From Macrostomum lignano (lineage: Eukaryota): a stretch of 64,000 bases of DNA. Below, piece after piece: positions 36,658 to 63,396 of the stretch. Location: the NCBI GenBank assembly GCA_002269645.1, contig NIVC01000319.1, positions 613,871-677,870 on the forward strand, written 5' to 3'. The notes below the pieces were generated by a model. That model searched no databases and was not told where the DNA came from. It saw nothing but the letters and a program-made list of their open reading frames with translations. Positions within the stretch are counted from its first letter, which is position 1; each line of letters starts with the position of its first letter. Position numbers and translations under genes: made by a program.

Positions 36658-37109
36658 GATAACAGCCTGGACTTGTGCGATAACGACCTGCTGCCGGCTC
36701 TTTTCGCCCAGCTGCCCCGCCTGCGCTGCCTCCGCCTCACTAACTGCAGCCGCCTGACCGCCAGGCCTGAGCGAATCTGCGAGACCTGCAGAGACTCGCC
36801 GCCTCGCCGCTGCCCGACCTGCTCGAGCTCGTGTTTACAATTGCAGCGATTCCAGCATCCAGCCTCACTGATGAGGCGGTGGCAGACCTGTGTGCCAGTC
36901 CGGTCGCCAGGGGCCTGCGGTGGCTCAGTCTGCACCCGTGCAACCAGCTGACCGCCGCCTCTCTCTCCAGCATCGCCAGCGGCTGTCCGTGGCTGTCCGG
37001 GCTGTGCCTCTGGAAGTGCCGGCGCATCGGTCCGGCGGACCGCGATGCCATTAACTCGGCCTATGCGAACTGTGTCAGGGTAGTTCTGTCGCTCTCCTGC
37101 CCTGATTGA
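36658..37109 (+). pseudogene. F-box/LRR unit 0: orphan last exon, frameshifted
   Basis: DLLPALFAQLPRLRCLRL..SSLTDEAVADLCASPVARGL..SGCPWL as in paralogs; indels near 36760 and 36840; no upstream exons found. Confidence 0.8.
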
Positions 37110-38590
37110 GCGCTTCGGCACCGCCAAAGTATGAATATAGACATTCATTCTCTTCAATGAATGCTTACTGCCATTTTTAACGGAAATTTTGTGTTTATTG
37201 ACTTCGATCCCGCCACAGGGAACCACTAATGACGCTTTGCAAGTTGACCTCGGTTTGTAAGCGGCGCACACTAACACAACAGTGCCAGTTTTGTAGAAGC
37301 TGTAGGCCTTAGATTCAACTTTTTATATTTTATTTTTTATTATTAGCTGTACTCTGTCTGTTTATTGTGACATTTCACACGTTTTGTGATAAACCTTTAC
37401 TTTTATTCAGTGTTCTACTAGCACGTTACTCGTGCAGAAGTTATTGTTTGTTTTACTCTTGATCTATTTTTGGCCTTAAAGTCTCTAAATTAGTACCAAC
37501 CAATGAAAATGCGACTCCAGTCTCAGCCAATAGGAAGCAGTGGTGTACAAAATAACCATCTCCCAGTTCGATAGAATGAAAAATTTGTATATCTGGATAA
37601 TAAACAAACACTTGCTAAGCCAAGCAGGAAGCTTCGCTCACTTTCCTCGCCCTCTTGCCGTCGCTCGCTCTTGCACATTTACCGGGTCGGACTGTTGGTA
37701 GCAGAACCTCAGAGTGAACCCAAAATACTCACAAGCTTGGAAGCTTCTTACCTGGAGTGCCTTCTTATATTACACTTTTTTGTCATTCAACGCGACTAAG
37801 ATTGAAATTAGCAAACACAGCGGACTGTGAGTAACTAGCCATATGATTGGATCGTCATTTGAATCCAATATTTCACTCCACTTGTATGCATTTCAATTGC
37901 AGCACCTTCAGCTCAACGAAGGAGACTGCTTTATCGAGTGGCTGCCGGATGAGCTGCTCACGCAGATCCTGTCCGAGCTGGACCAGACCAGCCTCGGCCG
38001 GTGCGCTCAGCTGAGCAGGCGCTGGCAGCGACTCGCCACGCAGCCGCGGCTGTGGCGCAAAATCCGCATCGGCTGCCGGAACCCCGGCATGACCCCCGGT
38101 CTGGCGCTCTGCCTGTCCGCCCAGCTGGCCGGCGCAGTGCTGGAGCTGCACGCGGACCGGCTGGCTGCTGACGAGCTCGTGCACCTGCTCAGCGGCTCGC
38201 CCGACTTGCAGAGCCTCACCATTGATGGCATCAGCGGCCCTCCCGGATCCGAGAGCCCGCTGGTGACGCTCAGTCGCTGCTGCCGCCGCCTACGGAGCCT
38301 CCGCCTGCTCCGCTGCGGCGGCCTGCTGTCAGCGCACTCGCTGGCGCAGCTGGGGGCCGGCTGTCCGCATCTGGCGCACCTGGCTCTGGATTTCTCTTCC
38401 TGCGCCAGCCTCGGGCTCCAGGGAAGAGTTCTCAACGCTGGCCTGCGGCCTGGAGTCCCTAAGCTGGCCTTCTTCAGTGCTCATGCTGAGCAGACAGTTG
38501 AGCACCTGGCCTTGACAATACCCGTCTGCAAGCGCTTGAGCCGCTTGAGCATCGGCTGCAGCCGAGAGTCAGGTAAGTCTCTCACTGAGG

Positions 38591-39202
38591 TGTGAGCATC
38601 GTCCAAATGGAAACCCCAGCTCGCCAGGCGGCTTATTACGGCTGTCGGTTGGCATGCAAACAGAAGACACCGCGATTTTGTTAGACAATTTCTCTTCCCA
38701 GTGGCTCAGAGAGCTGTGCAACCAGCTGGGATAGGGGCCACCTAGCTGGAAGCCGCACAAGTCCCTCCTGATGCTGCGAGAGCTCACAGTTGTGAAGAGA
38801 AAGAGGGACTCGCCCTCTTTGCAGACAGAACTTTGGTCGCCAAACAGTCCACGGTCCACTGGCCACAACACTAAATTTAACTGAATTTTACTGCACGGTC
38901 ACACGAGAGCGAGAGAGACCAAGAGCGGAAAGGCCCGCGCTTTAAATAGCAGAGGGGAAGAGGGGGGAAACGGGCAAGCCAGCGGACAGCCGCGACACCC
39001 CACCTCGCTGGCCAGCCAATCACGTGCCGCCGCGGCACAGGGCAGATAAGAAACTGAGGGCTGGGCTGGGCGCAAGACCAACTAGGGAGAGGAGTGGCCA
39101 GGCCAGAGTGAGGCTCAAGCCCCCCAAACCCCGGTCTGACCCTCGGGCCAACCAGAGCGAGGTAGAAAGGAAGGGAGCAAGTGGACACAGCATACCACAA
39201 CA
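38591..39202 (-). mobile_element. Solo-LTR-like repeat in unit A intron 1
   Basis: Minus strand begins TGTTGTG and ends CA; CCAAT box and TATTTAAA; diverged copy at 60294-60769; no TSD found. Confidence 0.5.
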
Positions 39203-39367
39203 TTTAGTTATTCGAATAAACGCCCAAATATAGCCAAGGTAGCGCAAAACACAGAAATGGCTTCTCTTGTTAACTTATTTTGATGAACGGAATTTACAGC
39301 AGCCCTTGAATTTTGTGCAGAGCAGCCTGATTTTCCATATCCGGCCCTGTTCACTCCGCAGTGCTGC

Positions 39368-61447: not shown

Positions 61448-62010
61448 TCTTCTCCTGGGACTGGACCCGTGAGTCAGATCTCCTGGGACTGGACCCGTGA
61501 GTCAGATCTTCTCCTGGGACTGGACCCGTGAGTCAGATCTTGTCCTGGGACTGGACCCGTGAGTCAGATCTTGTCCTGGGACTGGACCCGTGAGTCAGAT
61601 CTTCTCCTGGGACTGGACCCGTGAGTCAGATCTCCTCCTGGGACTGGACCCGTGAGTCAGATCTTCTCCTGGGACTGGACCCGTGAGTCAGATCTCCTGG
61701 GACTGGACCCGTGAGTCAGATCTTCTCCTGGGACTGGATTCGTGAGTCAGATCTTCTCCTGGGACTGGACCCGTGAGTCAGATCTTACCCTGGGACTGGA
61801 CCCGTGAGTCAGATCTTACCCTGGGACTGGACCCGTGAGTCAGATCTTGTCCTGGGACTGGACCCGTGAGTCAGATCTTCTCCTGGGACTGGACCCGTGA
61901 GTCAGATCTTGTCCTGGGACTGGACCTGTGAGTCAGATCTTCTCCTGGGACTGGACCCGTGAGTCAGATGTTACCCTGGGACTGGACTCGTGAGTCAAAT
62001 CTTACCCTGG
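61448..62010. repeat. 30-33-bp array repeating the exon-end donor GGACCC|GTGAGT, ~17 copies
   Basis: Unit tctcctgggactggacccgtgagtcagatct. Confidence 0.95.
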
Positions 62011-62565
62011 GGCCGGACCCGTTACTTTTATCTTTTTATCACACACTCTGGGCGCCTTTTGATGGGGCGCCAGAGTGCGGATAATGCTGGAAGACCAATT
62101 TTCACTGATATACTCGGTTTTCCAATTTGAGCTGAGAAAATTTCTGATTACAGAGTTTCTGCAGCTGCTGAGCAAGACGCCGAACCTGAAGGACCTCACA
62201 GTCAACTGCATTGGGTCGCTGGAAGAAAGATTTCATCAAAAGAAGTTTCAGCTGCCTTCCCTCCGTAGCATTCGCGTCTGCGACCTCCACCGCAACCGCT
62301 GGAGCTCCGAGTCCGTGCTGGCTCTGTTGAGCTGCTTCCCGGAGATCTGCAGCATCGGCCTCAGCCTGAATATGGCTGATGGGGAGCTTCAGCAGCTGCT
62401 CCGAGCGCTGCCTGGCAACCTGGAGGAGCTTCAGGTTAGCGTGCAGAGGTACGAGAAGCAGGTGGTGGACAGCCTCTTTGACAAGCTGCCAGCCTGCCTG
62501 TGGTCTCTCCAGCTGGAAGGCTTCATGGACTGCGGAATGCAGCTGGTTGAAGCCTTGAGTGGCTG

Positions 62566-62910
62566 CTCAGGTGAGCGGGTCTGGCGCTGGTGTGGGCTGG
62601 TGGCTGCTCAGGTGAGCGGGTCTGTTGCTGATGTGGACTGGTGGCTGCTCAGGTGAGCGGCTCTGTTGCTGGTGTGGGCTGGTGGCTGCTCAGGTGAGCG
62701 GGTCTGTTGCTGGTGTGGGCTGGTGGCTGCTCAGGTGAGCGGGTCTGTTGCTGCTGGTGTGGGCTGGTGGCTGCTCAGGTGAGCGGGTCTGTTGCTGGTG
62801 TGAGCTGGTGACTGCTCAGGTGAGCGGGTCTGTTGCTGGTGTGGGCTGGTGGCTGCTCAGGTGAGCGGGTCTGCAGCTGGTGTGGGCTGTGGCTGCTCAG
62901 GTGAGCGGGT
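62566..62910. repeat. 41-bp donor-containing array, same unit as 46441-46820
   Basis: ctcaggtgagcgggtctgttgctggtgtgggctggtggctg. Confidence 0.95.
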
Positions 62911-63396
62911 CTGGCGCTGGATGTCTCTAGCGACAACCTGCTGCCGGCTCTGCTCTCCCGGCTGCCCCGCCTGCGCTGCCTTCACCTCACCGGCAGCAGC
63001 CGCCTGACCCGCCAGGCCTGGGCGAACCTGCGCGCTTGGCCAGCCGCGACCCCGCCTGACTTGCAGGAGCTCGCGCTGCTTGGCTGCGCCTTCCGTGGCG
63101 TCACGGACGACGCCGTGGCCGACCTGAGCGCCAGTCCGATTGCCAGAGGCCTGCGGCGGCTCGCTCTGTGCAAAAGCTTCTTCTTGACCTCCGCCGCTCT
63201 CGCCAGCCTCTCCAGCGGCTGCCCCTGGCTGCCCAGCCTGTGTCTGCGCGGCCTGCGCAGCCTCGAGGCCTCCGATCTGCGAGCCTTCCGCTCCGGCTTC
63301 GAGCATCAGGTGAACATCGAGCTGGAGAACTGGCCTGTCTGGGGGTCCGAGCCCTGGCTTGCAAGCCGGGTGAGTCCCTGATTTCTGTAGCTCTGC

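Follow-up and report, generated by a model that had tools for sequence, protein, structure and literature searches.

How can a short stretch of coding DNA stay identical, silent sites included, in neighboring genes that have otherwise diverged almost beyond alignment? This question is raised by a stretch of 64,000 nucleotides (nt) from the flatworm Macrostomum lignano (contig NIVC01000319.1, assembly GCA_002269645.1, positions 613,871 to 677,870; hereafter the window), which at 36.6-63.4 kb carries a tandem array of F-box/leucine-rich repeat (LRR) genes of the FBXL type, with all units on the + strand. A 76-nt core of the F-box, GAGCTGCTCACG...GGCGCTGGC, is present exactly at 37951 (unit A), 43212 (B), 52321 (E), and 55782 (F), and with mismatches at 47709 (D, 3), 44741 (C, 4), and 60885 (G, 10). 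All of these copies are on the + strand, and the expectation from shuffled sequences is 0. A preliminary description of the locus, made from the letters alone, had reported the core as identical down to its silent sites in A, B, E, and F and nearly so in C and D, which agrees with the 0 mismatches in the former and the 4 and 3 in the latter. Most likely, as judged from the sequence comparisons below, region-restricted, recurrent short-tract gene conversion keeps the core identical between old paralogs. For the explanation as a whole, a birth-and-death array of FBXL genes with a role as ubiquitin-ligase receptors and a conversion-frozen core, we estimate a probability of roughly 0.8.

The array and its identical core

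The array contains six full three-exon units (A, C, D, E, F, and G) and two fragments (0 and B). In a full unit, exon 1 encodes the F-box and the N-terminal LRRs, exon 2 the middle LRRs, and the last exon the C-terminal LRRs; introns 1 and 2 are of phase 1 and conserved in position. The preliminary description had counted eight same-strand units with one exon plan. The common strand was confirmed, but the number was not, as unit 0 is a last exon only and B an exon 1 only, and D has no intron 2. Comparison of the window with itself yielded seven blocks each for the F-box exon and the last exon, and numerous intronic and intergenic minisatellites too. The units are as follows.

36664..37109, + strand: unit 0, an orphan last-exon fragment and pseudogene; in tblastn with all last exons, the match at 36664-37091 is split between two frames and contains a stop (QA*ANL)
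37903..42396, + strand: unit A; exon 1 37903-38565, exon 2 41393-41835, last exon 41929-42396; core at 37951-38026, exact
43185..43716, + strand: unit B, an exon-1 remnant; core at 43212-43287, exact; frame broken directly after the core
44708..47290, + strand: unit C; exons 44708-45361, 46022-46444, and 46916-47290; core at 44741, 4 mismatches
47655..50118, + strand: unit D; exon 1 47655-48310 (core at 47709, 3 mismatches); exons 2 and 3 fused, 49233-50118
52300..54643, + strand: unit E, intact with its own ATG; exons 52300-52927 (core at 52321, exact), 53675-54082, and 54168-54643; product of 503 amino acids (aa)
55758..58976, + strand: unit F, intact without an ATG of its own; exons 55758-56396 (core at 55782, exact), 57489-57911, and 58518-58976
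60867..63381, + strand: unit G; exons 60867-61464 (core at 60885, 10 mismatches), 62156-62569, and 62911-63381; one frameshift at ~61290

No homology to exon 1 or exon 2 was found by tblastn upstream of unit 0. Clean reading frames in the window are those of E and F only, perhaps also that of C. Unit A, matched by the UniRef model P0011, has a transposable element (TE) in intron 1 and, relative to protein P0164 and to an intact counterpart at another locus (L008, see below), a 1-nt deletion at ~41443. The C-terminus of unit C is shorter than that of the other units, and its exons 1 and 2 are identical to UniRef A0A1I8HH27 (P0006). Unit D carries two 1-nt frameshifts (~48069 and ~49569), and the deletion in exon 1 is not present in the D copy of L008. 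At 49570-49700, exon 2 of D runs directly into the last exon (CSGELTHLELDF); by comparison with all other units, D has lost intron 2. Unit E is 98% identical to UniRef A0A1I8HCL7, an M. lignano F-box protein (210-aa query).

Eight further M. lignano loci (L001-L008) were fetched as relatives for comparison. L001, L002, and L007 are additional tandem arrays, of which L002 and L007 are duplicates of each other (92-96% identity), and L003 and L006 are likewise duplicates of each other. L004 and L005 each hold a dispersed single gene between unrelated neighbors. L008 lies on contig NIVC01001389 (assembly Mlig_3_7) and matches window positions 27915-49962 with 95.6-99.6% identity.

The core was not confined to the window. 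Exact copies occur on contigs NIVC01001572, NIVC01001936, and NIVC01004222, in genes that otherwise show 72-87% DNA identity where they can be aligned. Among the fetched loci, L001, L002, and L007 (two copies) contain the exact core, and L003 and L006 carry 4-5 mismatches. When the seven F-box exons of the window were aligned, similarity ended ~20-30 nt upstream of the core and faded downstream. The core comprises 19.0 synonymous sites. The probability that one pair shows no silent difference is ~1e-3 at the silent divergence of the last exon and ~3e-7 at that of the LRRs, and the identity is therefore far above chance expectation.

Identity of this kind could be trivial, that is, the result of very recent whole-gene duplication, of assembly collapse, or of polishing with multi-mapped reads. 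Mlig_3_7 was indeed polished by Pilon with short reads and RNA-seq data (PMC5730564), and recent duplication in the genome is extensive. However, the flanks of the core are unalignable or heavily diverged, so that any read extending past the 76 nt would have a unique placement. The core is also found in the window, in Mlig_3_7 contigs, and in UniRef models, including the out-of-frame P0010 and P0012, and true recent duplicates are recognizable by 92-99.6% identity throughout, non-coding DNA included. The preliminary description had named recent whole-gene duplication or collapse as a possible cause of the F-box identity; the diverged flanks and the occurrence of the core in independent assemblies led to its rejection, and we regard an artefact of any of these types as extremely improbable. 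In the public models P0005, P0010, and P0012 the core is translated out of frame (AAHADPVRAGPDQPRPVRSAEQALA); these models are mis-framed or chimeric, yet they confirm the core nucleotides at other loci.

Constraint on the F-box peptide does not account for the identity either. The singletons L004 and L005 retain the peptide, but 13/76 and 17/76 of their core nucleotides are changed, many silently (11.5 of the 17 changes in L005 are synonymous), indicating that constraint on the protein is not sufficient to hold the DNA of the core constant. Conversely, pseudogenes retain it: the remnant B has 0 mismatches, and the pseudogene copies L002_5738 and L007_5689 have 1 mismatch. Protein-level purifying selection as the only cause was therefore rejected. 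Between the window and L008, 7/304 nt differ in the four shared cores, in line with the 0.4-4.4% divergence of the surrounding DNA. Mutations thus enter the core at a normal rate in near-identical duplicates and are erased only in the long term, which is the signature of concerted evolution and not of base-by-base purifying selection.

Silent sites, tract ends, and probable gene conversion

The divergence of the genes was determined from codon alignments of eight full units. Median proportions of synonymous (pS) and nonsynonymous (pN) differences per region were as follows.

Pre-core: pS 0.63, pN 0.38
Core (among A, E, F, L1, and L2b): pS 0.00, pN 0.00
Post-core: pS 0.17, pN 0.18
Exon-1 LRRs: pS 0.53, pN 0.47
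Exon 2: pS 0.57, pN 0.51
Last exon up to CPWL: pS 0.33, pN 0.19

The near-zero silent divergence over the F-box that had been predicted was thus observed in the core of A, E, F, L1, and L2b. Alignment noise was avoided by using columns with an invariant amino acid alone. At these columns, the share of pairs with different codons was 7% in the core and 17% in the post-core, rose to 41% and 39% in the LRR exons, and was 23% in the last exon.

The extent of exact identity around the core depended on the pair. Tracts started at position 1, 0, -5, -11, -14, or -23 and ended at 75-79, 86, 125, or beyond 190. The frequently shared start at position 1 corresponds to the hypervariable x codon of the LPxE motif, and pairs with the same codon at this place extend further upstream; a common 5' edge of the block as a real boundary was accordingly rejected. 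D, F, and L2b share ~270 nt at ~99% identity, followed by a sharp fall to ~60%. In a permutation test, runs of shared polymorphic sites were significant for most pairs, with p<0.0005 for many, and these runs were located at the F-box end and, for E-F, also in the tail of the last exon. Different regions also supported different relationships: E is nearest to F in the last exon (pS 0.16), and F is nearest to D and L2b in exon 1. Homogenization occurred independently of coding function, as the cores of pseudogenes have 0-1 mismatches and an intronic 41-nt minisatellite is 92-98% identical between the distant paralogs C, G, L002, and L003. Taken together, the silent-site profile, the tract analysis, and the incongruence between regions uphold the proposal of a conversion-homogenized constant end next to a variable middle.

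The same data bear on a second explanation, namely that the 76 nt are functional as a nucleotide sequence, for example as a small-RNA target, as a regulatory RNA or DNA element, or in translational control, and that purifying selection acts on every base. Exact identity, including silent sites, in at least 10 paralogs on four contigs would be expected of such an element, as would the same block edges in many pairs and the absence of any bias to silent changes in the diverged copies G and L003, as if all positions were equivalent. However, the predicted RNA fold of the core was not better than that of shuffled sequences (z = -0.97), and RNA structure was rejected on this basis. No Rfam match was obtained in the window, which rejects a known RNA family, and neither antisense nor extra copies of the core occurred outside F-box exons in the ~226 kb scanned (the window and seven loci). 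In addition, the tract ends vary with the pair and reach 125-270 nt in subgroups, pseudogenes keep the core, the silent sites of singleton family members have diverged freely, and the core has accumulated changes at the ordinary rate (7/304) between near-identical duplicates. We therefore consider a function at the nucleotide level very unlikely.

The last exon behaves less clearly than the core. It had been described as conserved, and we recovered seven blocks, at 36666, 41947, 46947, 49681, 54204, 58532, and 62933, with 72-87% nt identity. Its lower silent divergence is real and, from the alignments, could reflect either homogenization or simple constraint, with the E-F tract as the clear exception.

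Gene conversion, as opposed to another homogenizing process, is the mechanism we infer from these patterns. In this scenario, recurrent short-tract conversion among the paralogs, including those on other contigs, would keep the core identical, and ~50-270 nt following the core would be homogenized in some subgroups. The paralogs are old, with LRR exons heavily diverged at silent and replacement sites alike, and the array evolves by birth and death, through TE insertion, deletion, frameshifts, and the orphaning of exons.

Changes of this kind are seen in the comparison with L008. The two copies differ by a 2.0-kb TE insertion, a 2.5-kb deletion, minisatellite lengths, and 1-nt indels, that is, by structure as well as by presence and absence of sequence. 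The 2.5-kb segment, which contains the last exon of unit B, is kept in L008 and deleted in the window at 43810/43813. In L008 the TE is absent, and the frames of A and of D exon 1 are intact where the window has the 1-nt deletions at ~41443 and ~48069. Lesions that are not shared with L008 reflect either variation among duplicate or haplotype copies or mistakes in the assembly. The TE insertion, the 2.5-kb deletion, the frameshifts, and the orphan exon nevertheless agree well with the earlier characterization of the locus as a same-strand tandem array of F-box plus LRR (FBXL-type) genes with birth and decay.

Several points weigh against this interpretation. A tract of 76 nt is short for homology-dependent conversion, and it has the same 5' end in many pairs, at the variable codon just before the core. 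No conversion event was seen directly: a 3-nt cluster that distinguishes D in the window from D in L008 may be due to mutation or to conversion. The last exon of the dispersed singleton L004 differs from those of array members by a pS of 0.33, compared to 0.30 among array members themselves; L004 is thus as close as the array members are to each other, and homogenization of the last exon is not established. Some of the frameshifts in A and D, which are not present in the Mlig_3_7 counterpart, may be assembly errors. Finally, expression and function of the genes are inferred only from transcript-based NCBI gene models.

The leucine-rich repeats and the question of a repertoire

The LRRs had been called barely alignable. 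This holds for the DNA of most pairs, but exon 1 of C, D, and F aligns at 77-85% over ~450 nt, and as proteins all units align end to end, with 30-37% identity and invariant LRR leucines. In the LRR exons, silent sites are as diverged as replacement sites (pS 0.53-0.57 compared to pN 0.47-0.51), indicating that the middle of the genes is old and not fast-evolving only at the protein level.

Positive selection on the LRRs, which the preliminary description had expected, was not detected: the ratio of nonsynonymous to synonymous divergence (omega) ranged from 0.24 to 0.5 across the four pairs of recent duplicates, which together comprise 37 synonymous and 37 nonsynonymous changes. Compared to L008, omega was 0.38 for A, 0.24 for C, and 0.36 for D. 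Between L2b and its L007 duplicate it was 0.41-0.58 per exon, and the LRR exons did not exceed the last exon. Together with the equal silent and replacement divergence, these values speak against the designation of the LRRs as hypervariable or diversifying. Selection at single LRR sites may have acted, as the counts are small and the older paralogs too diverged at silent sites for the test.

These data also bear on the idea of a diversifying recognition repertoire, immune or similar, in which positive selection would act on the ligand-binding face of the LRRs while the ends stay constant. Variability does peak at the x residues of the LxxLxL motif and in the loop that follows each strand, with the leucines invariant; such variability holds in general for LRR proteins. 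Duplicate copies vary in structure and copy content, and the pattern is known in nematode F-box families (PMC8120010, PMC8665587). However, the LRR silent sites are as diverged as the replacement sites, also at columns of invariant residues, so that the divergence reflects age. The omega values for A, C, and D against L008 and for L2b against L007 are all well below 1, and most units in the window carry lesions. We thus regard diversifying selection of this type as quite unlikely. An immune or diversifying role is not indicated by any of the evidence at this locus, and the immune reading is unsupported.

The proposed analogy to the variable lymphocyte receptors (VLRs) of lampreys fared no better. 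VLRs likewise have LRRs, constant ends, and a variable middle, but their germline gene is incomplete and is filled in by somatic assembly of flanking cassettes. In contrast, the full units in M. lignano are complete three-exon germline genes with introns, and tblastn revealed no stray LRR cassettes between the units that could serve in such an assembly. The description as an immune receptor repertoire was therefore not retained, and the resemblance to VLRs is only superficial.

Another version would be a functional, polymorphic repertoire of receptors for SCF (SKP1-cullin-F-box) ubiquitin ligases, with old LRRs that each target a fast-evolving partner and conversion of the F-box favored for keeping all members compatible with one SKP1. 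We consider this version unlikely. If true, the targets could be proteins of pathogens or transposons, or sperm and seminal proteins in a sexually conflicted hermaphrodite.

Protein family, transcript starts, and surrounding DNA

The predicted proteins carry a recognizable F-box. The Pfam profiles PF00646 and PF12937 (F-box and F-box-like) matched the relatives P0001, P0002, P0151, P0158, P0164, P0004, and P0009, and the peptide LP(D/E)ELLTQILSELDQTSLGRCAQLSRRW fits the canonical F-box pattern. A phmmer search with unit E identified FBXL2 as the best match (6o60_C, E 4.4e-16) and also SKP2, FBXL5, and FBXL17. The AlphaFold (AF2) model of E, with a predicted local distance difference test score (pLDDT) of 82 and a predicted template modeling score (pTM) of 0.76, consists of three N-terminal helices and ~17 strand/helix repeats. 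In a Foldseek search with this model, 6o60_C (FBXL2-SKP1) scored 1e-13 and the plant complexes COI1-ASK1 and TIR1-ASK1 1e-12 to 1e-10, with FBXL17-SKP1 also among the top matches. The LRR solenoid lies C-terminal to the F-box, as in solved FBXL structures. By sequence and by model, the units are thus FBXL-type candidate substrate receptors of SCF ligases. The F-box would dock on SKP1, and the protein would serve as the SCF substrate receptor; both roles are predicted from these similarities. The M. lignano gene for SKP1 is Mlig014611.g1 (PMC9740662).

A search of 1.84 billion representative sequences yielded ~15 clusters at 50% identity with E <1e-18, and all of those looked up were from M. 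lignano. Some members of this clade lie in tandem arrays. The best matches outside M. lignano were generic LRR or F-box proteins from diverse taxa, with E 1e-13 or weaker. Within the databases searched, the F-box/LRR family therefore appears lineage-specific as far as the sequences go. Orthology to a named FBXL was rejected, as all matches better than 1e-18 were from M. lignano; the UniRef name 'F-box/LRR-repeat protein 15' (FBXL15) on two members is an automatic label. Database entries otherwise name members just 'F-box domain-containing protein' or 'hypothetical', and nothing relevant turned up in the literature searched, either under the Mlig gene IDs or on F-box proteins of Macrostomum.

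Several units appear to lack a start codon of their own. Units B, C, F, G, and L2b have no in-frame ATG, and in each an acceptor-like phase-0 site is present just upstream of the F-box. The first bases after such acceptors are 37903, 44708, 55758, and 60867 in the window and 10001 in both L002 and L008. The NCBI proteins P0151 and P0164, which are transcript-based and marked partial, begin with the first codon after such acceptors. The spliced leader of M. lignano ends in ...TTGCATG, and ~30% of the genes are trans-spliced (PMC8629364); gene boundaries in Mlig_3_7 were drawn with the use of trans-splice sites (PMC5730564). It is therefore plausible that the spliced leader donates the AUG. With repeats subtracted, the intergenic gaps measure ~0.4-1.1 kb, close to the operon range of PMC5730564, and the array is perhaps transcribed in the manner of an operon. 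If the polymorphic repertoire outlined above were true, the cluster might be transcribed as operons and its transcripts separated by spliced-leader trans-splicing, with the leader supplying the start codon.

Repeats and mobile elements within and next to the units are as follows.

46437..46820, + strand: 41-nt minisatellite in intron 2 of C, 9.4 copies; the repeat unit contains the end of exon 2 and the 5' splice site (GCTCAG|GTGAGC)
62559..62920, + strand: 41-nt donor-site minisatellite in intron 2 of G, the same repeat as in intron 2 of C
61447..62022, + strand: 31-nt minisatellite in intron 1 of G, 18.8 copies; the repeat unit contains the end of exon 1 and a GTGAGT donor
39369..41390, - strand: non-LTR (long terminal repeat) retrotransposon, 5'-truncated, in intron 1 of A; open reading frames (ORFs) for the C-terminal part of reverse transcriptase (RT) and for RNase H (RNase H E 6e-5)
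63393..64000, - strand: second copy of the non-LTR element, running past the end of the window; 98.2% identical to 39364-39975

The 41-nt arrays in C, G, L002, and L003 occupy the same position and are 92-98% identical, whereas the flanking exons are far more diverged. Minisatellites with the donor in their repeat unit give rise to 9-19 tandem GTGAG donor sites, and the same applies to L002 11121-11918 and L003 14195-14789. The non-LTR insertion in A is missing from L008, which is 99.6% identical here; the alignment skips from window position 39368 to 41391.

Outside the array, an LTR retrotransposon occupies 25068-29333, with 167-bp LTRs (25068-25234 and 29167-29333) that are 99.4% identical and gag-, protease-, and RT/integrase-like ORFs at 25297-29094. 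As judged from ORF sequence alone, a 229-aa ORF at 29763-30452 resembles a fragment of a mariner/Tc1-type transposase, and 16756-19144 (- strand) holds a further non-LTR element, distinct from the others, whose ORFs resemble RT and RNase H. At 19627-20070 (- strand), an annexin-repeat-like ORF (…GAGTDEQALIEIMTRTN…) lies beside a coding-looking 24-nt repeat. Long minisatellite arrays with periods of ~6-70 nt and lengths of up to 2.4 kb are dense in the window (4375-8707, 9848-10184, 14335-15171, 20265-20805, 20961-23371, 23921-24680, and 50401-52061). The window is in line with the 15% of simple and tandem repeats reported for the M. lignano genome (PMC5730564).

Relation to known systems and significance

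With the FBXL receptors, such as human FBXL2, SKP2, and FBXL17 and plant COI1/TIR1, the M. lignano units share the N-terminal F-box, the LPxE(L/I)L...W pattern, and a cysteine-containing LRR solenoid. In contrast to these, they have no one-to-one ortholog and belong to a clade of ~15 clusters from M. lignano only.

Lineage-specific F-box expansion, with a conserved F-box as opposed to the substrate domain, is said to have been described by Thomas in 2006. The F-box expansions of Caenorhabditis and plants resemble the array in their tandem clusters, their birth-and-death evolution, and an F-box far more conserved than the substrate domain (PMC8120010, PMC8665587). However, those families mostly carry an FBA, FTH, or DUF38 partner domain, and positive selection has been demonstrated in them. 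In M. lignano the partner is the LRR, no positive selection was detected, and the F-box is conserved at the nucleotide level by homogenization.

A close parallel to the restriction of homogenization to one part of the gene is found in clustered protocadherins, where region-restricted gene conversion of the variable exons was reportedly described by Noonan et al. in 2004. There, too, one part of the paralogs is homogenized and the recognition part is diverse, with silent-site islands that end in sharp drops. The gene family and the lineage are different, however, and the island in M. lignano measures only 76 nt (up to ~270 nt in subgroups) and lies over a ligase-docking motif.

The array appears to represent a family of ubiquitin-ligase adaptors that had not been described before, and every member detected comes from the flatworm model M. 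lignano. It provides a clear and compact case in which gene conversion would hold a docking motif of 76 bases constant, with divergence elsewhere in the gene that far predates the duplicates compared (~0.4-8% diverged). It also advises caution: silent sites should be checked before islands of identity are read as selection or divergent middles as diversifying selection. If the family does turn out to be a recognition repertoire, the idea of F-box proteins in surveillance would reach from nematodes and plants to flatworms.

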